Assembly: GCF_006345805.1 (NCBI RefSeq)
Contig: NC_042997.1
Location: 34,658,001-34,722,000, forward strand
DNA: 64,000 bases
Direction: 5' to 3'
Origin: Octopus sinensis
Lineage: Eukaryota
The translations under genes were made by a program, and so were the position numbers. A model generated the notes under the pieces. It saw only the letters and a program-made list of their open reading frames with translations. It was not told the DNA's origin and did no database searches. Shown in pieces: positions 1-30,752 of the stretch. Each line of letters begins with the position of its first letter. The stretch's first letter is position 1.

Positions 1-516
1 ATTACCTCCTCTATTACTGAACACATTCCCCAAAATTCACCTAATTGTAATTGCCGTCCTGGAACCATCTGCCCGTTACAAACCCATTGCAGAAGATATA
101 ATGTAATTTACAAAGGCACTGTCCTTAATCTATTACACAACTTTACAGCCATATACATAGAATCAACCAAACATTTTAGGCAAAGATATGCCACTCACCT
201 CCATTCCTTTAGATACGATAAACATAGTAAATCTACAACACTCACCAACCACATACATCAACTCAAAAATACAAATATTGCCTATACTCTATCGTGGTCC
301 ATACTAGACTCAGGGCTTCCCTACCGAGATCAACGCTCAACCTGCAAAATTTGCCTGAAGGAGGCACTTCACACGAAACACAACTCTCCAGCACTGCTAA
401 ATAAACATAATGAGGCACTAAGCACATGCAACCACCGCATTTTTCACACACTCAAATTCTACCACAAAACCAAATGCCTAAACGACCATACAATTCATTT
501 CCCCAATACCTATTAG
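1..516 (+). mobile_element. Penelope-like element, C-terminal GIY-YIG endonuclease coding region (5' part outside window)
   Basis: Frame +1 is open from 1 to TAG 514-516 with no ATG, so it is absent from the ORF track. It reads ...CNCRPGTICPLQTHC..NVIYK..AIYIESTKHFRQRYATHLHSF..STTLTNHI..WSIL..CKICLKEA..LLNKHNEALSTCNHR, the typical PLE endonuclease motif order. Confidence 0.85.
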
Positions 517-2934: not shown

Positions 2935-3241
2935 TAGCCCGTCTCTTGTAATTTCGATCAATTGCATCTTGTCCTCCCTCTTGTATAGAAGTGGGGCTAC
3001 AATCCAGCCTACCTCTACTTCTGGGGGGAAGGGGGGCATTTAATTTTTTTTTCCGGGACGTCCTACGTCCCAGATATAAAGATAAAAATAAAATATTTCC
3101 ACGTTGCAAGTTCGAGTCGAGTACTCCCTTGCACGCTCCGTTGACTCGAACCTTGCTTCTATTGTGGCGAATTTACCACCTCTGATTAGATACCTTTCAT
3201 AGTCGCACCAAAACACTTTTCGAAGGTGCTTTCCTCCATGT
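2935..3241 (-). pseudogene. Host Tx1-like element: 3' half of the interrupted ORF1
   Basis: Frameshifted translation MEESTFEKCFGATMKG/YLIRGGKFATIEARFESTERAREYSTRT/LQRGNILFLSLYLGRRTSR..LPP/EVEVGWIVAPLL aligns with IEEIEKCLGDIMKKATFVDRGKKYGTVEVRC..LKAENFTMWPTYKGRR..VPP of the ORF1 at 9212-10054. Confidence 0.8.
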
Positions 3242-3480
3242 GATTTTATTATTACCCACAAGGGGCGAACATAGATGGGACAATACAATCTGGGTCAGAC
3301 AAACGAATGGGTTTTTACAATAAATCGGATTTAAAAATTTTCATGAATTACAATAAATGGACAGAAATCGAATGATGGGACAGACCGGAAGACATTACGG
3401 GTGGAGTGGGTGCGGGTTTAGCTCGGACCCCACGAGCCCCGCCTCCCCACTGATACTTTTGGTTGCGCTTGGTATTACGT

Positions 3481-6400
3481 TTATGTTGTATCTTTCACTC
3501 GCAACTTTCGTGCTACATCCTTCCATCGTTCTTCATACACTCTCCTAGTCAGGCATATTCTCTCCAGCCCTATCTTCCTTTTCAGGTGAAAGATGAAATA
3601 ATTCATCAAACCAGGGCCGGAGATGAACTTGCCTGACTGTAAACCTTTCATTCTCGTCTTCCATATCACCTCTTTCGCAATTGCTACTACAACGAGAAAA
3701 CGAAACTTACCTTCATTCACGAGGAAATCCGGTGGGTCAATTTTTGTAATCGACTCAGTCGACAGCTGTACTCTTCGTGTACCTGACAACAGGTGTTCGG
3801 CATAAACCCACACCTCAGACACGTCCGGACAATGAACAATAGCGTGCAGGACGGTTTCCCTATCCCGCCCGCATCTTGGACATATCGGACTGTCTTGGCC
3901 ACCGTGCCTTGCGAGTTTATCCCGAACAGGTAGAGCTCCTCTGTAGCATTGCCATGCCAGAGACTTCTGGAAGTTGTCCAGTGTCCTCGGCTCGAACGTA
4001 CGTCGGAACAGACTGGCCAGCTGATTATCGTCGAGACCTAGGGTTTCCTCCAAGGTATCTTCACATTCCGCCTCTACCAACCCTCTATAGAGGAATGTGG
4101 TGGAACCCCCACCGCAGGCGTTGCCCGAGCGACGGAATAGCAGGAGAGCCTTGCGACACTCCGTGTACCAAGTACCAAGTTTCGATCTACGATTCAGCCA
4201 GGTTTCCCATCCACCGAAACTAGTGAACTTGGGAAACATCAGTTTTGCTAGCGAAGACCACACCCGTTCACCATCCAGGTAGAGCCACAGATGTCTTAAC
4301 CTCAGCGCATGTCTGCGCATCATCAGCCAAGGCATCCCTAGCCCACCCTTTAACGGTTGTTGACAGCAAGTAGAGCGTTTCACAAGTGGTTTCCCGCCCT
4401 TCCACAAGAAGTAGAAGAGCTGTCTTTCCAACTTGATCAACCACGAGTCAGGGCAAGGAACGACGGAAAGGCGGTAGGTGATAACCGATGCGATAAACAC
4501 ATTGGCCACCTCCGCCCTCCCTTTCAGGGATAGCCACCGCCAAGACCAGGTCTTGGCTACTGCAGCCACCTTGCTCGTTACCTCGCCCCAATTCTTCTCT
4601 ATTTGGAGGTCTGGACCGAACCAGACCCCTAGCAGTTTAATCGGACCCTCCGTCCAACGTCCCACGACGCTGTCAGGAGGCATCGACTTGCCTCTCCAGG
4701 TGCCGAGTTGCAAGCCGACTGACTTTTCGCGATTAACTTTTGCTCCTGTCACCGTCTCGTAAACCTCTATGGCCTTGCCTACTTTACATAGGTGGTCCAT
4801 TTCGGTTACGATGATGGTGATGTCATCCGCGTACGCTGACACTGATTTTCCATTACCTGGCTGTCTCGGGATGCCGCTCAGTTTTCGCAGTAATGGCTCA
4901 AGAGCCATCACGTACAAAAGCGGGGAGAGCGGACACCCTTGACGAACCGAGCGTTTGATTTTGAACGGCTTCGACAAGAAGCCGTTCACCCGAACTACCG
5001 AGTCGATGTTATCATAAATTTGGATAATCCACCTGAGGAAGCCAAGGCTCAGCCCGAACCGTGCCAGGGCAGATACCAGGTAACGATGGTCGACCCTATC
5101 AAAAGCTTTAGATTGGTCTAAATGGACCAGTGCCCCGCCCTTGCCAGAATCACTATTAAACCCCTCTATAGTGTACCGCATTAGATGGAGATTATCCTGA
5201 ATGGATCTGCCCGGAACGGCACATGTCTGTGCCTCTCCGATCAGACCATCCGCGACACGCGCCAATCTTTTCGATAACACTTTGGCCAAAATCTTCAACT
5301 CTGTGTTTAGCAGAGTGATGGGCCTGAAATTATCAATGCACTCCCCCTTGCTCGGGTCCTTTCTGACGAGAGTCACTACTCCCCGGCGCACAGATCTGGG
5401 TATAAGCCCGTTCTGCTGCCAGTTCGCATAGACCTCCGCCAGTAGGTGCCCGAACAAGTCTGGCATACTCTTATATAACTCATAGGGTAGACCATCCAAA
5501 CCCGGCGCCTTGCCCGCGCCGCAGTCCGCCATTGCCTCAAACACCTCCCCAGGCGTGATTGGCCCTTCACAGCCCTCCGCATCTCGCCCCGATAAGCGCG
5601 GCAGACCGTCGAGTAGGTCCGTAAAGGCCCTCCTCCTATCCAGTCCGCCGCACTCACCGAAAAGCTGAGCGAAGTGCTCCTGAAAGGCCTCACACATCTC
5701 CTCGGGTTCGTTTATCAACTCACCTTGTTGGTTCGTCAAAGATCGAATCGTGGCATCGTTACCATGCTGAGCTTCCACCACTCGGCCCATCTCACGGCGT
5801 TGATTCCTTCACATCCCATATGACGGATTCTAGCCCTGACAATGCAGCCCATGTGTTTGGCCTCGAGGTGCTGGTTTAACACCAGTCTCTTGGACGCCAC
5901 CTGAGCCGCAGAGCCAGTTTTCATGGCTTCCTCTAATTCCTTAACTAGAGTAGTTTCCCTTCTAGCCTCTCTAGCCACTACTCCTATGCTATATCTAATA
6001 GACTCAAACTTGATGGCTCGTTTGAGGGCGTACCACCATTTGTTATTAATGATGGTACCAGATAGTGCCCTCTGAATTATATTCCTAATCCGGTCTTTGT
6101 ACTCCTTAATCGCCAAAAGGGACGTATTAAGTTTCCAGTAACCGGATCCTCTATTTTTAACCTTATCTATGTCAAGCTTACAAGTGACCATTTTATGATC
6201 ACTGTAGCTGATCGGGTAAAACTGTGGGCACTTAGCTATTTTACTGTCTACTTTTCTAATTAGTATTCTATCTAAATATGACCTGGAAGATCCGTCGCTG
6301 TTTGACCATGTCCACAATGGAGCGTTCGGAAATTCCAGCCTATAAGGATCTGCTAGCTCAAAGCGGCTTAGCAGTTCCATGAAGCCACTGTTGCCTTTTC

Positions 6401-6877
6401 TATCTGGACACGAGCCAACATAATCTACATCCGCTTTGCAAATTGTGTTAAAGTCTCCTAGCACCACTAATGAATGCGAAGTACAAGAAAGCAGTTTTCT
6501 AGTTCACGAAAATAATCACTTTGCCCTGTATGGTTGGGTGCGTAAATTGCAACCAGTCTGATAACTTTACCATTACTGAACGTCAAATCCATGACGACCA
6601 GCCTACCTTCTGGATCTGCAAAAATTAACTTTTTCTCAGAAACCCGGTTTCTTTTTAATAGGACCAACACCCCACTCCCGCCTGTAGGACTGCCAGGAGA
6701 GAAAAAACTCTCGTAGCCGTCAAACAGCGGGAGTAGACCTCTTGGCCCCTCTAACCGGGTTTCTGTAGCAACAATAACATCTAAATTACGCGACCTGATG
6801 TCATGCAGGAAGCGACCTTGCTTCCAGCCTGCTCCCAGGCCGCGCACATTCAAACAACCAACATAAATGTAATCCAT
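3481..6877 (-). CDS. ORF2: APE endonuclease + reverse transcriptase + C-terminal CCHC zinc finger (~1130 aa after repairing two 1-bp frameshifts)
   Basis: EN motifs GCLNVRGL, ATETR, AIYAPN, LGDFN, YLDRI, YSDH. RT motifs NFRPITLLN, LDQSKAFDRVDH, RQGCPLSP, YADD. C-terminal CPRCGRDRETVLHAIVHC. Frameshifts near 6484 and 5784. Confidence 0.92.
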
Positions 6878-6885
6878 TGCTTACC

Positions 6886-8262
6886 TTATATCAGTGGTTC
6901 GGTTTTCTCTTGTTCTTCAAACTCTTTTTCTGGGCCTCGTGGGGGAGTCTGACGTAGGCCCTCGAATATATGTGGAGATGTTACATCCAACCTAAGTGGG
7001 CCTACGTCATGGAAGAATTCTGACTTTATCCGCCCGTAATCCCTCCGGTCTATTCTGTAAATTACAAAGTCATTTTTTTTTTCTACTTTCTCTACTTTGG
7101 CCATGGCTGCCAACACGTTTCCGAGTCTGCTATTTGATGCCTTTACGGCCATATATGCGTTCATTGACTCTTTTTTCTTTTTTAAAATTACTCTGGGAGG
7201 GGTGGTTTCCGTTTTTCTTTTTTTTTTTCCGATAATTTTTTCCCACCCTTCCTCATTTATCTTTTCCTCGCTCTTTTTTTTTTCCGCCGCTGGTTCTGCT
7301 GTCACCGTCACCTCCACACCTTCAGTCTTCCCTTCTGGGCCGTCTGACGCTGCTTCTGGTGACACATTGTCTTCTTTTTCTTTTGGCTTAGGTGCTTCCT
7401 GCGGTTTGGGTTGGGGTTGGCATTCCGCCCTTACATGCCCCTTCTTGCCGCAGCCGAAGCACCTCGGTTCCTGCCCTCCACGAACACTGTTATTTTCTCG
7501 TCTTCACTAATCTTTACCGTTTCTGGAATTTCTTCCAGTGTTTGCACCTCCGCCTGAATGGCTATCACTATTTTTGGCCTTTCCAAAAATCCTCTTCCTC
7601 CACTGTGGCCTGGAGGATGTTTATTTTTTCCTCCAGACCTACCATCACTGCTGCCACCAGACATTCATCATCAGCCTCTGGCGGTATGTTGTTCATTGAA
7701 ATTTTTGACGTCCTTTTTCCTTTATACAATGGTAGTAAGACAATGTTTTCCGCTTTGATCGGCTCCATCGATAGTTTCTTCGCTATATCCTCCGTAGTAA
7801 AACGCACCTCCACTGTGCCGTATCTTTTTCCTCTGTTTATATACGTTATTTTGTCCATAAACGGTTTTAGACAAGACTCTATTTTTTTTCTTCGATTTTT
7901 TGGATCATTTTTTTCGTTGTGTCGTAAGTTTTATATATTATTCTTTTTTTCTCTATATCGTCATGTATTTGTATGTTTGTGGCCACAGTCACTTCTGTGC
8001 CTTCTTTTTTTACGCAGTCTGCAAATTTTTTAAAATTGTCTATATTTATTTTTTTGATCTTTTTCCCAGCCACTTCAGCGAATTTTTTTGCTGGAGTTGA
8101 TGCTGGTACTGGTTTTTCCATTTTCTTGGGCGACGCCGCCTCTTTTTTCTTCGGCGACAACGCTTCTTTTTTTCTTGGCGACAACGCCTCTTTTTTACTT
8201 GGCGACAACGCCGGGTATTCATCCTCGCTCGTCACGGGCGAATAAGAGATGGGGGACTCCAT
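6886..8262 (-). CDS. ORF1 of unit 3 (~460 aa after repairing three 1-bp frameshifts): RRM-like region, CCHC knuckle, charged linker, C-terminal domain
   Basis: Joins ORF-track pieces 7879-8271, 7568-7858, 7431-7664 and 6886-7365. Knuckle CFGCGKKGHVRAEC at 7420-7461. Frameshifts at T8 7882-7889, T5 7571-7575 and TT 7468-7469. Confidence 0.88.
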
Positions 8263-8493
8263 CTTGAACAAATGGCTTTAACAAGCCTTTGGTAAATCCA
8301 AATTAATTGTAGTTTTCCCCCACTGAGGGGGGAACACCAACGCGAAGTCTTCGCGCGAAGGCTGACTTCGTCCGTTAGACAACAATAGACAAAAACAGGT
8401 AGACCAACAGTATATAATAACAGAGATAATAGTACGAGAGCAAAAAATATATATCAACTTACTAATAACGCAAAAAATTGCTTTCCTCCATGT

Positions 8494-10405
8494 TGTTTTA
8501 TTATTACCCACTAGGGGCTACATAGATGGGACAATACAATCGGGAAAATGAATAATGAGTTATGAAGTTTGTACAATGTGGTGCAATGCCCACTCGATCC
8601 CCGAAATCGAGCGGTTACATTTCGTCATTTATTTTTATTCGTCAACAATATTTTCAAATAAAACATTTTATACATTTTCAACATACATTTCAAAAAGTTT
8701 TACAAAGTTCAACATTTCTTTTTTTTTTTTTCCGAATTTAAAGTTCTTTTTATCATTTACAAATTAAAGTTTTCACAATACCTTTTCTTTTATATATACT
8801 CCATTATGTCTACCAAATCTGAGTAAATTTCCATCGTTCGAGGCCACCTTGGAAGTCGGCATTTCATATGTTTTAACACGTTCTTGCCAGCTGCCTCGAT
8901 GAACGCCTCGGCGTCGTTCTCGTGGACGAGTGCACCTGTTTCTTTCCATTCGGTGCCCATCCTGACCCACGTATATCCGTTTGTTTCGCTTATTAAATTT
9001 TCCATCTCCTCACAATGCTTGTGATGGATCAACGTTCCATAGTATTTGAATTTTCTATTCGTACCTGCGTTTTCTCTAGTTTTTCTCTTAGGACTTACTT
9101 CCTCTTTTTCTCCTCCCTCGGTTTCTCTCTTTCTCTCTTTTGCTTTCTCTTCTTTCTTTTTCCTTCTCTTGTCTTTTTGGCTCTTTGTCTGCCGTCTCTC
9201 TACCCTGTGCCTTAAGTTCCTTTCTGTTGTTTCTTTTCCTTTTTGCATACCATCTTTTCCTTTCTCTTGGTTCTGTTCCTTCTCTTGTTCTTTTCCTGCT
9301 TTTTCTCTTTCCTTAATGTACTTTCCTTTTCTTTCTCTTGCTTTTGCCTTGGCTCCTTCTCCTCTACTTCTGCACCCTGTGAATTTTGCTCCTTTTCTAC
9401 TATCTTCTTCCCTTTGTTTTCATTTTCCTTCAGTGCGCTGTTACTTCCCTTCTCTTGTTGTTTCTCCGTTATTTCCTTTTCCTTGTTTTCGCTGTTCTTT
9501 CCTTCGTGTTCGTTTTCCTTCTCTCCACTTGGTGTCTCTTTTTGCTCCGCTGTGAATTCATACAGCGGACATTCCTTTTTTATGTGCCCTCTTGAACCGC
9601 ACAGGTAGCAATTCGGTTTTCTGCCTTCCACTATTACACTAATTGTTTTTTCGTTTTCTATTTCTATTTGGAAGGGAAATCTTTCGATGTCTTCAATTGT
9701 GGCCATCAGCCACAACTCGACTCCGAATCCCTTCCAATTTACAACGTTCGTCTCCTTAATTGACCCTATTTCTACTTCCTCTTTTGCTGCTCCAATAATG
9801 GCTGTTACTAGCATTTCTGTTTTAATATTTGGGGGCACCTTTGGGACTCTTACCCGTACCCCTCGTCTTCCTTTATACGTCGGCCACATGGTGAAATTTT
9901 CCGCTTTCAGGACAGTGGAAGCCAATGAGGCCGCCACTTCCTTTGTTGCGCATCTCACCTCCACCGTACCATATTTCTTTCCTCTGTCCACAAAAGTCGC
10001 TTTTTTCATGATGTCCCCCAGACATTTCTCTATTTCTTCAATCGTCACTCTCACCAGTTTTCTCGTGTTTCTATCTTGCGTTCTATACGTTATCGTCTTG
10101 TTATTTTTTCTTCTATTGTTTCCACAGGCGGGACCAGCTTCACGCTGTCACCCTCCCTTTTGACGAACTTCTCGTATTCCTTCAATTGTTCTTTTCTAAA
10201 GAACACTTCTTTTATTCTAAGTGACTCGTCACTTTGTTGTGTGGCGACCCCCGCGTAAGTCTCCATGACTTGAGGGTCGACACACCTTCTATAAAAGGTT
10301 CAAACACGTAGCGGCAAACGCCTCGCGCGATTCAATTTTTGACAATTTTTAACAGTTTTTTTTCAATTTTCACATACAAAATAACTCACAACACATGTGG
10401 ATAGA
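8494..10405 (-). mobile_element. ORF1-only Tx1-like element (unit 2, HAL1-like) with intact LINE 3' tail and 12-bp TSD
   Basis: No EN/RT sequence. The 3' ~50 nt are nearly identical to the unit 3 tail. TTTCCTCCATGT at 8482-8493 and 10406-10417. Confidence 0.85.
8773..10266 (-). CDS. ORF1 of unit 2 (~500 aa after repairing about three 1-bp frameshifts)
   Basis: METYAGVATQQ... (ATG at 10266) joins 9212-10054 (knuckle CYLCGSRGHIKKEC at 9569-9610), 8790-9248 and 8773-8970. Confidence 0.85.
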
Positions 10406-10417
10406 TTTCCTCCATGT

Positions 10418-12077
10418 TATTTCTTTATTACCCACCAGGGGCTACGAAGAATGGCGGAACATAACAAAACATGGGAGACATAGAACAATATGATTAAATT
10501 TATGAGCAAATGAAAATGAAAAATGATAATATGAAAGCGATGCTAACGGCCCCCTCCGCCAGCATCACTTACCTGTCCTTTTGTTTTCACTGTCACCTGA
10601 ATGTTCATTCCCAATACGAAGACCATCCATATCCATTCTTACTCCGAAACTGTCCTCCATATATTCCACGAATTCATCGCTCATTCTTGTATCTTTCACC
10701 TCCCAATTCTCCCTTTCACACCTCAACACAAACTCATCTATATTATTTCTTTCCAGCACTGCATATCTGGTCCCATCCATTTCATACCATTCATACTCCT
10801 CCATTACCCTTTCAACCTCTTTCTGTTCAGTCACAATATAAATGTTCGGCCTGGGTTCGTTTTCAAACTCTTGTCTGTCTGTATTGTTATTTTTCTTTGT
10901 TTTTCTTGTTGGAGGGGAGCGGGTGGGTTCACGTCTGCAGGGGAAGGGTAGGATTCAGAGGGTGGGTGGTGTTGGGGTGGGTTGGGGCTTCGCACAGTTT
11001 TTCTTTTTCTTTCTTTTTTTCTCTTTTTTTTTCCTTCTTCCCACTCTTGTTGCATCTCCTCTTCTTCTGTCGTTTCTTTTTCCTTTGGTTCTCTTTGGTT
11101 TCTTCCTCTTTTGGGGCTTCCGCGACGATTTCCTTTTCTTTTTCCTTAGTGGTGGAGGGCAGTAGGCTCTTATGTGACCCCTCAGGCCACACTTGTAGCA
11201 CCTGGGCGCCTACCCTCCACCCACACTCTCATAATAATATTCCAGTTTTTATACTGTCCGTAAGCTTTTCTATAACTTCCGCCTCCGTCTGTATGTTCAT
11301 TACTAGTGTGGCACCTCTCACGCCTTCATATTCATAATGGCGTGGAGGATGTCCACTTTATCTTCATTTCCTTTGATAACCGCAGCCGTTATTAATTCGC
11401 CCTCTAGGTGTGGAGGTATTCCTTCACCCTAATTCTGGTGGTCCTTCTATTCAAATACGAGGGGAACAAGTAAACTTTTTGTACTCACCACCTTGGCTGC
11501 TATATTCCTGGCTGCTTTCTCACTTTTAAATTGTACCGTTATGGTTCCATATTCTAATCCTTTTGTCATGTACACAATTTCTTCTCCGTCCGTTTGAAAG
11601 CCTCTTCAATTCCTTCCATGTTAATCACTTCCATTTTTCTACCTCCATTCATAAATACTTTATATTTAATGGTTCTACGATGGAACCAGTCTCCGCGCCC
11701 TGCTAGAGGCAACAGCTCAACCTCTCCGTTCTCCTCCTCCTTCATGAACTCCTGGAAGTCCGTCAACTTAGCCAGGTCTATCTCTTTTTCTGTTGACTTC
11801 TTCGTTATACCTGCATAGGTGCTTTCCATTTTTTTCACCGCCAACTCCTCATCAGATGTCGACGAATTTTCAGAGAAATTTCTCCCTTCCATCTCATCCG
11901 TTTGGTAGAGGCGGCTCATAGTCGCCTCAGACCGAAAAACGGCCCCTCCCGAACAGAAAACGTGCGACGCACAGAACCAGTGCGACGCGAAACCGCACCA
12001 ACCGACGTTCCAATTCCGCAACCACAATTCACTTTTTGTTGTTTTTCTTTTTTAACGAATTTTACAGAGCGCAAAAA
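10418..12077 (-). mobile_element. ORF1-only Tx1-like element (unit 1, HAL1-like) with LINE 3' tail
   Basis: ORF1 is followed by a ~145-nt 3' UTR ending GTAGCCCCTGGTGGGTAATAAAGAAA. No ORF2 sequence. Confidence 0.8.
10565..11919 (-). CDS. ORF1 of unit 1 (~450 aa, many 1-bp frameshifts as assembled)
   Basis: MSRLYQTDE..TIKYKVF../YMTKGLEYGTITVQFKSEKAA../PSYLNRRTTRIRVK/IPPHLEGELITAAVI../knuckle CYKCGLRGHIRAYC at 11159-11200/..EYEWYEMDGTRYAVLE.. Confidence 0.78.
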
Positions 12078-12190
12078 AACGCGACCTTTTTTCTCTACAT
12101 TGTATACTTTATAGACAATAGTCTTTTCTTTAATTTAATTTTTTATTATCCATCTGGACTATTCCATTTCTGCACGCTAATTTTATTTCA
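12078..12190 (-). pseudogene. Host Tx1-like element: 5' half of the interrupted ORF1
   Basis: 12134-12078 translates to IKEKTIVYKVYNVEKKGRV, matching IEKKRIIYKTYDTTKK (unit 3) and RRTIKYKVF (unit 1). It joins MEESTFEKC at 3239 with the conserved Tyr-to-Cys spacing of 21 residues. Confidence 0.7.
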
Positions 12191-12387
12191 ATTTATTCCC
12201 ATTCATGTGAAACCACTTACTCAAGTTCAAGTCATTGATGCAATTTTATACCAATTGCTATTTTTACTTTTGTTATGTTACTACATATAATTCAATTGTT
12301 ATTATTATTTTTATTGTTAAAGTGAAAGTATTTGACATAAAATAGAGAAATGTTTTTGTTTCACTTTTAAAACGTAATACTGAAATA

Positions 12388-12724
12388 GTGGAGAAGATAT
12401 GATATTGCTATGGGCTCGCTCTATGCAAGAAGTTGAACATTTCTTTTTGCCCATGAGACTACATGAAACCTAAGTAAGGCATGTGTAAAATTTGAATGGA
12501 ATTGGTTGTGTAGTTCTCAAGTTTTAGGGAATCGTAGTGGAGAAGATATGATATTGCTGTGGGCTAGCCCTTGGCAAAAAGTTCAAAACTCTTTTTGCCG
12601 ATGGCACTCCCCGGACCCGAAGTAAGGCATGTATAAAATTTAAATGAAATTGGTTGTGTAGTTCTCAAGTTTTAGGGAAACACACAGACAGACAGACACT
12701 TTCTCAGTTTTATATGTATAAAGA
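12388..12724 (-). mobile_element. Non-autonomous Helitron-like element, 5' part, with a ~149-bp internal tandem duplication
   Basis: Minus strand begins A|TCTTTATACATATAAAACTG..GTCTGTCTGTCTGTGTGT. The repeat unit 'gtggagaagatatgatattgc' occurs at 12388 and 12537. No 3' CTAG end seen. Confidence 0.55.
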
Positions 12725-12963: not shown

Positions 12964-13980
12964 TACACAGAGAGAAAAAAACACAGAAAGAAGGAGAGAA
13001 AAAAAATGCGTGCAGTAACTAACGAACCAACATGGCGATCTGATTTCGGCCAGAAGTCAAAGATCAAGCATGAGACGCGAGAGCGAAATTAGGGGAGATA
13101 ATAGGGTTGAGTGACCAGCTCCAACATAAGGGTGTGTGTGTGTGTGTGTGTATGAGAGAGTATTAGTGCGTATGAGAGGTCTGGACGTGTGTATGTATAG
13201 GGTTGGTGTATGTATTAGTATGTATTAGTATGTATTAGTACGTATTAGTATGTATAAGGGTGTGTGTATGAGAGAGTATTAGTGCGTATGAGAGGTCTGG
13301 ACGTGTGTATGTATAGGGTTGGTGTATGTATTAGTATGTATTAGTATGTATTAGTTGGTGTATGTATTAGTATGGCACATCATATATGATGTGATGTGTA
13401 AAGTCGTGTGGTGGTAGTGTGGAGAGAGAGGAGAAGAGGGGAGGAGGAAGGAGGGGGAGAGAGGGGAGGGGGAGAAGGAAGGAGGAACGGGGGAGAGGGG
13501 GAGAGAGAAGGGGAGTGAGGGAGCAGAGGGAAGGGGAAGAGGGAAGGAGGGAGGGAGAAAGAGGGAAGAAGGCAAGGGGAGTAGGGGTGAAAGGATGAAG
13601 GACTGAAGAATTAGGGGTCGGGGGGGAAGTAGGAGAGGGGTTAGATGAGGAGGGGGGGGAGAGTTGAGACCAAATGGCGTATAAGAGCGAAGAGAGAAGA
13701 TTAATTCCTGTTCACGGCGCAAACGGGACTCCGGATGGCCTCTGTGTAAGGACAAACCGAACACAGATAGGTGTTGCAAGGAGTGACCGGTGGAGCGGAA
13801 ATGGCGAGAGACCGGTGTGTCGTTCGCAAGGTGGATGTCACGAAGGTGTTCCGCGAACCGGTATATATATATGTATATATATAACGGGAAGGTTTACGAA
13901 AATAAACAAAAGACGAAGGCAGGTGGAGTACAAACAAACAATTGTATTAGTATGGCGCTCAGGAATAGAAATGAAACAAG

Positions 13981-15579: not shown

Positions 15580-17103
15580 TATAACCTCCACATCGTGCAA
15601 ATGATGTATCGGTCACCGCGGTGCTGGAGAGGATAGAGTTTCAATGCTATAAGGCAGTCTCAATGATCATGATCAGTCATGCCCTTTATTCTTTTAGTCA
15701 ATGAACTCTGAGGTGATTCAATTTTAGATATGTTTTGTTTTGTATGGGGAGACCATAGGGGGCAGCGGTATTCGAGATGTAGCTGTTCAAAGGACGAGAA
15801 AAGAGGAATCATGGTATCTTGTTCTCTGGGCCGGAAGGTGCATAGGATATCCAGGAGCTCATCCTTCGACCTATATCGACTTTATTGTTTGAGTGAGCAC
15901 TCCAGCTGACTTTGTTATCAACAATCACTCTAAGTTCTCTGATATTATTAGATGCCCTGAAGAAAGAGAGTATGGCTGTTTCAGCATAGTCTTTTTTCCA
16001 AATTTTCCCTCGTTTTAGTTGCATTTTCTTTTTGTCAACCCATTGACTCTCAGCATGTAGATCAGAATGGAGTTCAGTTCGGTCTTCTTCTCCATTGATA
16101 ATTTTCTGGAGCTTGGAGTCATCAACGAATATTTTTACTTTACTGTATTTTATGACGCTAGAAAGGTCAAATATGTAGACTATAAAGAGTAGCTAGCCCA
16201 AGACAGTAGCCTGATGGACACCACTGGTGACTTTTGCTGGGCTTGAGTGGATTCCACCGATCACAATACTCAATCCAGTGTAGTAGTTTCCCACGGATTC
16301 CAACATTTGACAATTTTGACTGTAGGATATTATGGTCAACTCTGTCGAACGCTCTACTGAAGTCAAGATATATGACATCAGATTTCGAATCTGATCCCAA
16401 GGCTAAAAGGATATCATCAATAAGAGCTGAGTTGGACAGTCCCTGCCGCAGCGAAAGCTATGCTGGTTTGACATTAGGAGATTGAGGCTTTCCAGGAAGC
16501 CAGCTATCCTTGATCACACCACCCTTTCAAACACTTTAATAATATGGGAGGTGAGTGAGATTGGGTGATAGTTGACTGCGAGGGATCTGTTTCCCTGTTT
16601 GAAAAACGGGATAACAAACTGGGATAAGAGCTGTTTCGGTGTATAACCTGAGTCTAAAAAATTTCTCTAGAAGTTGGTCAGAGGACTGCAAGTTGGTACC
16701 TACATTCCTTCAGGAGACTAACGGGGAATCTATCAGGGCCCACAACAGAATAGTATTTGATCTTATTTATTGCTGCTATGATGTGTGAAGCAATAATGGT
16801 GATGTCCGAGATTATATGCTGGGAAACGATTTCGTTCACTTCACTTGCGTCAATATCAGTGGGATCACTAAAGACAGAGCAGTATTGTTTCTGCAGTACT
16901 CTTTACTCTTTTACTTGTTTCAATCATTTGACTGCGGCCATGCTGGAGCACCACGACCCCGGGACTTATTCTTTGTAAGCCCAGTACTTATTCTATCGGT
17001 CTCTTTTGCCGAACCGCTAAGTGACGGGGACGTAAACACACCAGCATCGGTTGTCAAGCAATGCTAGGGGGACAAACACAGACACACAAACACATACACA
17101 CAA

Positions 17104-17140
<37 letters not shown>

Positions 17141-18540
17141 CATATATACGACAGGCTTCTTTCAGTTTCCGTCTACCAAATCCACTCACAAGGCATTGGT
17201 CGGCCCGGGGCTATAGCAGAAGACACTTGCCCAAGATGCAACGCAGTGGGACTGAACCCGGAACCATGTGGTTGGTTAGCAAGCTACTTACCACACAGCC
17301 ACTCCTGCTATTTCTTTAGCATCGTTATGGTGAATGCCGTTATCATCGATAAATGGACCACTGGGTGAGATGGCGGCCCTTTGCTTATTTGCATATGACT
17401 AGAACACTTTTGGTCTCTGTTTGATTATTTTGATTACCCACATTTCTTCTGCAACTCTTTGATTTTCAATTCAGGTTCTCATGTTGGTCTGCAGATAAAG
17501 CTTTTCCAACTCCAGCCTTTTCATTGTTGTTGAATGTAGATGTTGTATGTAGGAGTATTTTAATTGGTTGATTATTTTTATTAAGTCTTTTGGGGTGCCT
17601 GATGAGTGTTCTTTTTCTCTCTTGGAAGCCAGTTTCCGTTTGTGTTAGTGGATTTCATAGGAGCATGTCTTGAGCATGTGTATGTGACAATGTCCTCAAA
17701 GTACTGCCACGTGGCTTCAATGTCAGTGGAGCTGAGAGTGAAAGACCAGTCGATAAAGGACAGGTCATTTGTGCTTGCTCCCCACTCAGCTTTGTGGAAG
17801 TATATGTTGTCAAATAAGTGCTGTGGAGTGTGACTGGCTGGTTTGGTTTTGATACGGCGGAAATAAATGCTGTAGAGTATCATGTTGTTGTCTGAGAGGA
17901 GAATCTTTTCAATTGAAATCCTGTGAATGGAGCTTGAGTGGTTTATTAATATTAGATCCAAGATCCTTTTATTCTGTCTTGTTGGTTCGAGCACTAGCTG
18001 TGTCAGGAAAAATTCATCCATTAGATTAAAGAGTAATTCTGTTGCTGCTTTGTCTGGTGTAGTGAAGTTGCATAACTTCAGAATATTTGTGAGCTAGTTT
18101 ACATAAGGGAGGTTTAAATCACCCATAATTGTATGTTTCCAGAGTCGGAGTTTTAATAGAAGGACTTGATTTTGTTGAGGCATTCTTCAAAGCACTTTAG
18201 AGGTTCTTAGGGAGACCCGTAGAGACCAACATTGATTATGTCGTTGGCCTTGTAGTGATATGGATTCACAGTAACCATTTGAAAATATGTCCTTGGCATC
18301 AACTGAAAAAGAGTCATGGAGAAAGATAGCTGTTCCTCCTTTATTTCGGTTTGTGCAATTTTCACGGATGATGGTGAATTTTTTAATTTTGACTGTAGGA
18401 TATTATGGTCAACTCTGTCGAACGCTCTACTGAAGTCAAGATATATGACATCAGATTTCGAATCTGATCCCAAGGCTAAAAGGATATCATCGATAAGAGC
18501 ATGGCATCCATGTGAGTGCTGTTTAGGTAAGTTTTAGTAA
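15580..18540 (-). mobile_element. Decayed CR1-clade LINE (EN and RT remnants) with a nested SINE
   Basis: MGDLNLP, FLTQLVLEPTRQNKRILDLIL, GPDRFPVSLLKEC, DVIYLDFSRAFDRVDH, VTSGVHQATVLG, IFVDDSK, YRCPLWSPH. Many stops and frameshifts. Confidence 0.85.
16898..17308 (-). mobile_element. Full-length SINE family A with internal (TA)/(TG) microsatellite, nested in CR1
   Basis: Head, CORE-like part, microsatellite and 3' part 'ggtgctccagcatggccgcagtcaaatgattgaaacaagtaaaag' are all present. Confidence 0.85.
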
Positions 18541-25459: not shown

Positions 25460-25543
25460 GACACACATTCGCACACACAGAGACACACACACACACACAC
25501 ACACAGATACACAAACACACACAATATACGTACTTACAAAGAC

Positions 25544-25746
25544 GGCGAACTAGCAGAATTGTTAACACGCAGGGTGAAATGCTTAGCGGCTTTTCGTCCA
25601 CCTTACGTTCTGAGTTCAAATTCCGCCAATGTCATCTTTGCTTTTCATCCTTTCTTGGACAATGGAATAAATACCAGTATAAAACTGGGGTCGATGTAAT
25701 CAACTACCTCGAAATTGTCTGCCTTGTGCCACAATTTGAAATCATT
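25544..25746 (+). mobile_element. tRNA-derived SINE family C (Meta-domain-like core)
   Basis: GGCGAACTAGCAGAA..GAGTTCAAATTCCGCC..TTTGCTTTTCATCCTTTC..TACCAGT. Confidence 0.7.
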
Positions 25747-29647: not shown

Positions 29648-30195
29648 TAGAGGCACAAGGCGTGAACTTTATGGGAGGAGGGCTAGTCGATTTCATTGAC
29701 TCCAGTGTTCAAGTGGTACTTACTTAATCGACCCCGAAAGGATGAAAGACAAAGTCTACCCCAGCGGAATTTGAACTCAGAACGTAGCGACAGGCGAAAT
29801 ACCGCTAAGCATTTCGTCCAGTGCGCTAACGATTCTTATTTCTTTACTGCCCACAAGGACACAAACAAGGACAGATAAACGGATTAAGTCGATTATATCG
29901 ACCCCAGTGTGTAACTGGTACCGCTAAGCATTTCTGCCAGCTCGCCGCCTTCGACAGGCGAAATGCCTATTTCTTTACTACCCACAAGGGGCTAAACACA
30001 GAGAGGACAAACAAGGACAGACAAACGGATTAAGTTGATAATATCGACCCCAGCGCGTAACTGGTACTTATTTAATTGACCCCAAAAGGATGAAAAGTAA
30101 AGTCGACCTCGGCGGAATTTGAACTCAGAACGTAACGGCTGACGAAATACAGCTAAGCATTTCGTCCAGTGCGCTAACGTTTCTGCCAATTCGCC
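29648..30195 (-). mobile_element. Cluster of three family C SINEs (29648-29833; internally deleted 29836-29948; complete 29968-30195)
   Basis: Repeated 'gaatttgaactcagaacgta', 'gctaagcatttc' and 'aaacggattaagt' blocks. The latter two copies have a tail resembling the Tx1 3' end. Confidence 0.8.
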
Positions 30196-30752
30196 GACTT
30201 TGATAATGCACGTATTTTCTTTGCTGAGCCAATGAAAAATATCATACTTAAAGCGTCTCTTCTAATTTGCTGTACATTCCTTCAAATATTTCACCGAGAA
30301 TATTCATTTTTAATGCCGCGAATGTATTAATGACACAGCGGACATTTTTATCGAAAAATGGAATTTAAGAGGTATCCACCTACTTTTGAGCAAGTATTTA
30401 GTTGCTTACTTCTCCGAAAGTACATCATTCTAGGTGAGATGTGATATATTTCTCATGAATCATGGAGAATTTACTCTTCTTACTAATGTTATCGACATTA
30501 ATTTCCTTGCAAGAAATGCACTCATGCATAAACTTCTGTTGATTTGATGATATTCTCCTCCAGGATTCTTTATAAGTAGGTTGTCTTCTAATCTCACTAT
30601 GTTGTTTATAATGCTGTATACACATGATACACACGTAGTCTATGTATATTTGCATGTATATATTAATGCCTATATGTCTGTAGCTATTCCTCCATCCATC
30701 CATCCACTCCTTTCACTCCCTGTCTGTCTCTGTCTCTCTCTTTCTGTGTCTG

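Follow-up and report, generated by a model that had tools for sequence, protein, structure and literature searches.

Probable dead copies of two ORF1-only LINE families in a Helitron-borne array of the Octopus sinensis genome

A stretch of 64,000 nucleotides of the Octopus sinensis genome (NCBI RefSeq assembly GCF_006345805.1, contig NC_042997.1, positions 34,658,001 to 34,722,000 of the forward strand), referred to here at its full length as the window, contains three head-to-tail units related to long interspersed nuclear elements (LINEs), ordered from 5' to 3' as unit 1, unit 2 and unit 3 (u1-u2-u3). Units 1 and 2 have a first open reading frame (ORF1) and no ORF2, and they are probably dead copies of two old non-autonomous ORF1-only families, derived from a LINE of the L1/Tx1 type and mobilised in trans into arrays that are carried by Helitrons. 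All units, ORFs and Helitron parts of the window are read on the minus strand unless stated otherwise.

Units restricted to ORF1

Unit 1, a member of the u1 family, spans 12085-10419 and appears on a three-frame map as an ORF1-only LINE derivative of ~1.67 kb, whose decayed ORF1 region covers ~11919-10565 and whose 3' untranslated region (UTR) and tail finish at ~10419. At its junction with unit 2 lies the spacer AACATGGAGGAAA (10406-10418), a copy of the target-site duplication (TSD), and this sequence recurs behind units 2 and 3, running on into the 3' flank. Unit 2, of the u2 family, is an ORF1-only LINE derivative of ~1.92 kb (8495-10405), the ORF1 of which begins with the ATG at 10266, ends with the stop codon at 8792-8790 and includes a CCHC knuckle at ~9625-9569 (Pfam zf-CCHC, E=1.4e-5). 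A second copy of the TSD, the spacer AACATGGAGGAAAGCA (8479-8494), marks the junction with unit 3 (3243-8478), which is a full-length LINE of the L1/Tx1 type with ORF1, an apurinic/apyrimidinic endonuclease (APE), a reverse transcriptase (RT) and a zf-RVT domain. The third target-site copy, CACATGGAGGAAAGCA (3227-3242), is found between the tail of unit 3 and the segment that follows it, here called segment Y.

Both ORF1-only units have a 5' UTR of ~150 nt, a single ORF1-like coding region with a CCHC knuckle recognised by Pfam as zf-CCHC, and a 3' UTR of 150-290 nt, which agrees with the initial annotation in that each unit passes directly from a knuckle-bearing ORF1 region to a short 3' UTR. 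The same annotation had reported no trace of endonuclease (EN) or RT in them and, in fact, tblastn with the EN and RT of unit 3 gave no match in 8480-12085, and zf-CCHC was the sole domain returned by Pfam for all three sense frames of units 1 and 2. The strong divergence of the ORF1 proteins was likewise verified, with 33-40% identity across the central region. Relative to the ORF1 of unit 3, those of units 1 and 2 share 33-42% identity over ~100-250 aa, with E down to 1e-42. At the DNA level, the similarity among the three units is confined to the tail, which extends over 66 nt at 91% identity between units 2 and 3, whose ends had already been described as almost identical, and over 37-40 nt at ~90% identity between unit 1 and the other two.

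Multi-copy families and selection on ORF1

The conceptual ORF1 of unit 2 matches nine proteins of Octopus vulgaris and that of unit 1 nine more, from many chromosomes, and 11 loci (L001-L011) on nine chromosomes of the O. vulgaris assembly GCA_951406725.2 were fetched and analysed. These loci hold ~30 u2-type units, belonging to at least four subfamilies and 71-97% identical to the window copy, and at least 15 u1-type units or fragments from three subfamilies; across subfamilies, the identity of both unit types to the window copies is 70-97%. The closest relatives of unit 1 are at 97% identity in L008 (20836-22521) and 95.5% in L010, and unit 2 shares 90-97% identity with units in L002, L004, L007, L010 and L011. 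Every full unit measures 1.65-2.0 kb, which leaves no room for ORF2, and none of the ~45 units contains EN or RT. Some of them retain an intact ORF1, namely L007_3 (493 aa), L001_5 (467 aa), L007_1 (473 aa) and L008_8 (472 aa). Therefore, being multi-copy, free of ORF2 in all cases and intact in ORF1 in some, the units represent members of ORF1-only families and not single-copy or local deletions.

A functional member of these families is 1.7-1.9 kb long and has a 5' UTR of ~140-170 nt, one ORF1 of 467-493 aa, a family-specific 3' UTR of 150-350 nt and the tail, and its ORF1 comprises a conserved central domain, the CCHC knuckle, a K/E-rich linker and a C-terminal domain of ~90 aa. It was also observed that the u2 subfamilies, all of them ORF1-only, can be aligned over their full length, with 3' UTR sequence absent from u3 among the aligned parts. 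Because of this, the simplest reading is that their divergence would have accumulated after the loss of ORF2, in the ORF1-only state.

The ratio of nonsynonymous to synonymous substitution rates (dN/dS) was 0.19-0.22 among three intact u2 subfamilies separated by dS of 0.87-1.5, with a bootstrap interval of 0.13-0.26 for one pair and values below 0.4 for each domain, the C-terminal one included. Frame-aware comparisons gave 0.26 between u1 subfamilies and 0.19-0.27 even at dS of 0.1-0.24. Near-identical copies from the same or sister arrays, in turn, showed dN/dS of 0.6-1.0. Low values between subfamilies and high values between near copies are the signature expected of selected active lineages whose individual copies decay neutrally, and ORF1 is under purifying selection in the ORF1-only lineages, followed by neutral decay after insertion. 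With values of 0.19-0.27 between ORF1-only subfamilies, neutral evolution of ORF1 is ruled out, and the census of copies together with purifying selection supports the long-lived non-autonomous families that the initial annotation had proposed.

Host Helitron and insertion sites

The whole three-unit array of the window is enclosed in a DNA element that spans 12724-2752. Helitrons are characterised by a 5'-TC, a 3'-CTRR, a hairpin located ~11 nt before the 3' end and insertion between A and T without TSD. In the window, the 5' arm of the element (12086-12724) begins with TC after an A within (TA)n, is 88-97% conserved in seven loci with an identical terminus and includes a tandem repeat with two copies of 148 bp (84% match; 12386-12679), whose copy number differs among Helitron copies. 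The 3' arm (2752-2955) contains the hairpin GACCCG-GCAACGA-CGGGTC, followed by TTTAATGCTAG and then by the T of (TA)n. The ends are exact in every copy and always within (TA)n, with TCTTTATATATATAAAACTGAG directly after an A on the 5' side and the hairpin GACCCGGCAACGACGGGTC, then TTTAATGCTAG, directly before a T on the 3' side. The termini, running from TC to GACCCGGCAACGACGGGTCTTTAATGCTAG between A and T, are identical in seven loci, with CTAG after the 3' hairpin, and thus present the 5'-TC, the 3'-CTRR, the hairpin and the A/T insertion without TSD. No Rep/helicase ORF was found in the arms, which total ~0.85-1.1 kb, and no search for an autonomous partner was made. Judged by these termini, the host element is a non-autonomous Helitron.

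Nine of the 12 arrays, those of the window and of eight of the 11 loci, are inside this Helitron family, at one of two positions. Site A, AATTCCAGTCT(GTTATA), is used in L002 (two u2 units, then u3), L004 (u2-u3) and L007 (u2''-u2'-u2-u3). Site B, CACATGGAGGAAAGCA, located at the start of segment Y, is used by the u1-u2-u3 array of the window and in L001 (eight u2' units, then u3), L005 (four u2' units, then u3), L006 (at least seven u2' units, then u3), L008 (nine u1'' units, then u1, with u3 absent) and L010 (u1-u2'-u2'/u2 chimera-u3). Regarding the site-specific insertion suggested by the initial annotation, a strong preference for two fixed positions of one Helitron family is thus apparent, but strict specificity is not, since other sites are also used.

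Segment Y (2956-3226), which measures ~270-310 nt and opens on its 5' side with the site-B target, belongs to the site-B variant of the Helitron only; it follows the arrays of L005, L006, L008 and L010 and is missing from L002 and L004. Its assignment to the 3' UTR of unit 3 was considered and rejected, because the u3 copies of L002 and L004 stop at the tail without it. Two short palindromes, GTTCGAGTC...GACTCGAAC and GGGACGT...ACGTCCC, are present in this segment, along with flanking AAGA(G) direct repeats.

The homology between the paralogous loci and the window stops at 2738-2749, just outside the Helitron terminus and in the flanking (TA)n. As homology ends with the Helitron, the 11 loci are neither alleles nor orthologues of the window. 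Additionally, unit 3 is 98.4% identical to its copy in L005, whereas the Helitron arms of the two loci share 93.5% identity, and therefore the LINE entered Helitron copies that already existed.

Retrotransposition of the ORF1-only units

Each spacer repeats the 11-21 nt with which the local 3' flank begins, and hence the units sandwich copies of the TSD. TSDs of 11-25 nt were found at insertions, which are sometimes truncated at the 5' end. In L003, a u1'-u2' array without u3 is inserted in the head of a short interspersed nuclear element (SINE)-like repeat and has three copies of a duplication of ~19 nt, and in L009, 5'-truncated u1 fragments with a duplication of 18-25 nt occupy a non-Helitron site. 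In L011, a unit of the unit 2 type is preceded on its upstream side by three u1'' insertions, one full-length and two with different truncation points, and the same duplication, made of the 5' end of that unit 2, flanks all three. This indicates that the u1'' copies entered successively and after unit 2. It was also verified that the 5' junctions vary from unit to unit within the L005 and L006 arrays. On the basis of the TSDs and 5' truncations in L003, L009 and L011, the ORF1-only units are read as truly retrotransposing elements.

The array structure also has consequences for gene annotation. The O. vulgaris annotated proteins P0004, P0010, P0014 and P0018, from L003, L008, L011 and L010, respectively, consist of ORF1 pieces of adjoining units spliced into chimeras; in one of them three C-terminal domains follow in a row, and in another the C-terminus of a unit 1 is joined to the linker of a unit 2. 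Such chimeric 'genes' are annotation artefacts of the arrays. Long homogeneous arrays are those at L008:5234-22506, with 10 u1-type units and no LINE at the end, and L001:2261-16503 and L006:1-12854, with 8 or more u2-type units.

Shared tail and the candidate source of ORF2

At their 3' ends, the three units of the window share a specific tail of ~45-66 nt and have no poly(A). In an alignment of 14 elements, the conserved tail comprises ~45-50 nt (...TTGTAYTGTCCCCTCTRTGTNGCCCCTNGTGGGTAATAAWRAAAY), and the 3' UTRs upstream of it are family-specific. The window contains four copies of its core motif, for a chance expectation of 0.01, and the fourth copy belongs to a SINE-like repeat of ~260 nt (29965-30225, minus strand), the last ~50-65 nt of which are the tail of units 1-3. 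The tail variant AAAGAAAT was found both in u1 and in this repeat, which is multi-copy in the window (also at 25523-25705 and 29695-29921) and in the related loci. A B-box-like GTTCAAATTCC is visible in its head. ARAGORN and Rfam detected no tRNA in the repeat, which is therefore not classed as a tRNA-derived SINE, and Rfam at gathering thresholds returned no match in the whole window.

Unit 3 provides the candidate for the autonomous partner. Its Pfam matches are RVT_1 (1e-31), zf-RVT (3e-8) and Exo_endo_phos, and it has a separate ORF1. The closest solved structure is that of the human L1 ORF2 protein (ORF2p; E=5e-48, versus 1e-25 for R2), which indicates affinity to the L1 superfamily only. 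The architecture is that of the Tx1 clade, with an APE-type endonuclease, RT and a C-terminal zinc-binding domain in ORF2, and a separate ORF1. The Tx1 label of unit 3 and, by descent, of units 1 and 2 is thus applied by analogy of architecture and behaviour. An intact ORF1 of 443 codons is found in the u3 copy of L011, and O. vulgaris was reported to have 13 recently active L1-Tx1 families (PMC13282606).

In the mechanism that we propose, the RNA of an ORF1-only element would be bound by its own ORF1 protein (ORF1p), a putative RNA chaperone, and the ORF2p of an autonomous LINE with a matching tail, of the unit-3 type, would recognise the tail in the manner of LINE/SINE partners of the stringent type and reverse-transcribe this RNA in trans. 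Integration strongly prefers the two Helitron positions and also the positions directly beside resident units, and each insertion would regenerate the target, so that successive insertions could build head-to-tail arrays with sandwiched duplications, of which u1-u2-u3 at site B would be one. Further amplification takes place at the DNA level, by tandem duplication and, apparently, by copying along with the Helitron.

Evidence against and alternative explanations

Several observations weigh against or qualify the interpretation of units 1 and 2 as members of trans-mobilised ORF1-only families, the first being the state of the window copies themselves. Compared with the intact third unit of L007 (493 aa, 95% identical), the ORF1 of unit 2 has five 1-nt deletions (~10109, 9315, 9225, 9142 and 9110), all within short homopolymers, and zero nonsense codons. 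Relative to the intact L008 unit 8 (472 aa), at least 11 indels shift the frame in the ORF1 of unit 1, and several frame changes are needed to read it. Unit 3 is also broken, with ORF1 spread over three frames and ORF2 likewise. Assembly error was considered as the source of these frameshifts and is disfavoured; between the window and its O. vulgaris paralogues the indel spectrum is symmetric and similar to that of paralogue-versus-paralogue controls, and since it is not skewed the frameshifts are probably real mutations. On their sequence, then, both ORF1-only units of the window are dead. The complete ORF1s and the autonomous unit 3 of the initial annotation have to be given up, given the five and at least 11 frameshifts in units 2 and 1 and the frameshifts in both ORFs of unit 3.

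The RRM-like (RNA-recognition motif) region that had been attributed to ORF1 is a candidate that neither sequence comparison nor structure prediction could demonstrate. An RNP1-like motif, RGKKYGTVEV, is conserved, and the RRM_3 match in Pfam is weak (E 0.099). A profile of the central domain compared with PDB and Pfam recovered CCHC knuckles only, and the AlphaFold2 model of P0001, built on a 13-sequence alignment, was poor, with a predicted local distance difference test score (pLDDT) of 38 and a predicted template modelling score (pTM) of 0.22. Regarding the partner, an intact ORF2 was found in none of the seven u3 copies examined, and the search of the protein database for ORF2 homologues found no close O. 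vulgaris protein, the best having 60% identity. RNAalifold on 14 tails recovered only an invariant hairpin of 3 bp with zero covariation. The sample of loci is also small and was chosen via annotated proteins.

A further group of adverse observations concerns amplification at the DNA level, seeing that most copies sit in Helitron-borne arrays. The L001 array has seven identical junctions, the L008 array is a three-unit higher-order repeat without target-derived spacers, and two fragments in L009 share one truncation point. The array of the window is colinear with that of L010, the arms, u1, u2 and u3 all being ~94.5-96.5% identical, and the homology ends at the Helitron ends. This composite, made up of arms, u1, u2, u3 and segment Y, corresponds to L010:8036-19375 against window 12724-2752, at a uniform ~95% identity and at a different genomic site, which suggests copying of the Helitron together with a LINE cargo of ~9-11 kb, or else gene conversion between Helitron copies. 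Arrays thus grow also by tandem duplication and, apparently, by joint copying with the Helitron. Since part of the copies stems from these two processes, copy number overstates retrotransposition, and the argument for the latter rests on the selection result and on the TSD and truncation evidence.

Such observations are central to the rival that survives best, which is nevertheless unlikely. It holds that an ORF1-only fragment was captured in the Helitron once or a few times and that the units do not retrotranspose themselves, having been amplified only by rolling-circle transposition of the Helitron, gene conversion and unequal crossing-over. The occurrence of nine of 12 arrays within one Helitron family fits this view, as do the homogeneity of the L001 and L008 arrays and the colinearity of the window with L010, where arms and cargo are equally diverged, by ~5%. 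However, passive cargo cannot experience the purifying selection recorded for ORF1 (dN/dS ~0.2). TSD-flanked arrays and fragments also occur outside Helitrons in L003, L009 and L011, the same TSD is found with different 5' truncation points, and different subfamilies are mixed in single arrays in L007 and L010.

A somewhat less likely explanation is that each array results from a single event of target-primed reverse transcription, in which the RT, having read one RNA through to its 5' end, would jump to the tail of a second tail-bearing RNA. As expected from such jumps, the u1'' units of L008 follow one another tail to 5' end with no target-derived spacer, although the same pattern would result if a few founder junctions had been duplicated in tandem; the 3'-most position of u3 in most arrays is also predicted, by cis-preference. 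On the other hand, a jump from RNA to RNA would not make the local target duplication seen at most junctions, nor would it account for the L011 units, which differ in truncation point and each have the same TSD. The least credible alternative, and a very improbable one, takes u1-u2-u3 as a single long LINE, made up of several ORF1 modules and with tail repeats in its interior, that is transcribed and retrotransposed as a whole; ORF1-only units do lie upstream and u3 at the 3' end in eight arrays, and u1 does precede u2 in the window, L003, L010 and L011, but the spacers match the local target and differ by locus (ACATGGAGGAAA, AATTCCAGTCT, CAGAAACGTYAGCACGCCG, GAAATCTACCCACGTGT), the number and type of units vary (1 to 10), the arrays of L003 and L008 are free of u3, every unit comes with a 5' UTR and a tail of its own, and single-unit insertions with their own TSDs are seen in L009 and L011. 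Weighed together with these alternatives, trans-mobilised ORF1-only families remain the probable explanation of units 1 and 2.

Other features of the window

Other LINE-like fragments were observed at 16272-16394, 17581-18021 and 18384-18467 (minus strand); they comprise weak RT similarity to unit 3 and a 146-aa ORF that resembles the end of an endonuclease/RT junction. Two further ORFs, of 171 codons (1-513, plus strand) and 180 codons (13354-13893, minus strand), have Cys/His-rich motifs and lie beside (TA)n-rich sequence, and they are possibly remnants of the nuclease domain of another transposon. Pfam returned no match for the window ORFs at 1-513, 13354-13893 and 17581-18021.

Relation to known systems and significance

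HAL1 is a non-autonomous derivative of L1 that has ORF1 and lacks ORF2, forms its own multi-copy families and relies on a related autonomous LINE (PMC5753468, citing Smit 1999, Bao & Jurka 2010). The octopus units are its functional counterpart, having kept ORF1, lost ORF2 and formed multi-copy families, and in a broad sense they are of the HAL1 type, with an ORF1p homologue, no EN or RT in the family, TSDs with 5' truncation and selection on ORF1. In the strict sense, they do not belong to HAL1, given their Octopus host and a specific tail in place of poly(A). HAL1 comes from mammalian L1 and has a poly(A) end, of the relaxed type, whereas the octopus units have a specific tail of ~45-50 nt, of the stringent type, together with a CCHC-type ORF1, site-preferential insertion, head-to-tail arrays, a mollusc host and an L1/Tx1-type LINE alongside.

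In Drosophila, HeT-A and other ORF1-only telomeric elements of the Jockey clade share head-to-tail arrays with relatives that encode ORF2, on whose ORF2p they rely, and ORF1-only lineages can spawn new ORF1-only lineages (PMC13534243). The octopus ORF1-only units are also found in head-to-tail arrays with ORF2-bearing relatives. However, the Drosophila elements target chromosome ends, whereas the octopus arrays, from elements outside the Jockey clade, are internal (12-157 Mb) and in a Helitron, and no host function is suggested for them.

The insertion behaviour recalls that of Tx1 elements and SINEs in crocodilians, which prefer one DNA-transposon family, where they use two unrelated positions and insert sequentially in tandem, sandwiching the TSD; target-specific elements of the clade include Tx1L in Tx1D, and Tx1-Mar and SINEU in Mariner-N4_AMi (PMC4494074). 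A LINE with APE and RT, the preference for a DNA transposon, two positions in it, non-autonomous partners that share the target and TSD-sandwiching tandems are common to both systems. In octopus, by contrast, the target is a Helitron and the partners include protein-coding ORF1-only elements, and the likeness is one of architecture and behaviour. The tail in LINE/SINE partners of the stringent type is presumed to be the recognition site of ORF2p, a principle cited in PMC4494074 and PMC5786205. As in these partnerships, a short conserved 3' tail is common to the octopus LINE and its non-autonomous elements, although two of the tail-sharing partners are 1.7-1.9 kb long and encode a selected protein.

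A broader reading of the arrays is offered tentatively, as a possibility that we consider less probable than not by some distance. In it, the non-autonomous Helitron would be the preferred landing pad of a Tx1-like LINE community, formed by an autonomous LINE, two ORF1-only families and a SINE, and would then copy arrays of ~9 kb as rolling-circle cargo in a two-tier partnership. If this were true, retroelement genes would spread by a DNA-transposon route. Within the two-tier reading, the loss of ORF2 may be favoured in LINEs that form arrays and are specialised in a target, convergently with the telomeric elements of Drosophila.

L1-Tx1 and Helitron families are listed in a repeat annotation of O. 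vulgaris from 2026, in which ORF1-only elements are not mentioned (PMC13282606). The arrays within Helitrons bring three transposon classes together at one locus, namely the Helitron, the LINE community and the SINE, which is an unusual nesting and explains the chimeric 'genes' of the O. vulgaris annotation. ORF1-only LINE derivatives have been documented mainly as the mammalian HAL1 and as the telomeric HeT-A-type elements of Drosophila. The octopus case would add two deep ORF1-only families in a cephalopod, with ORF1 measurably selected without ORF2, and it bears on how coding and non-coding parasites may share one ORF2p via a specific 3' tail. It would thus represent a natural experiment on the cis contribution of ORF1p under a borrowed reverse transcriptase.

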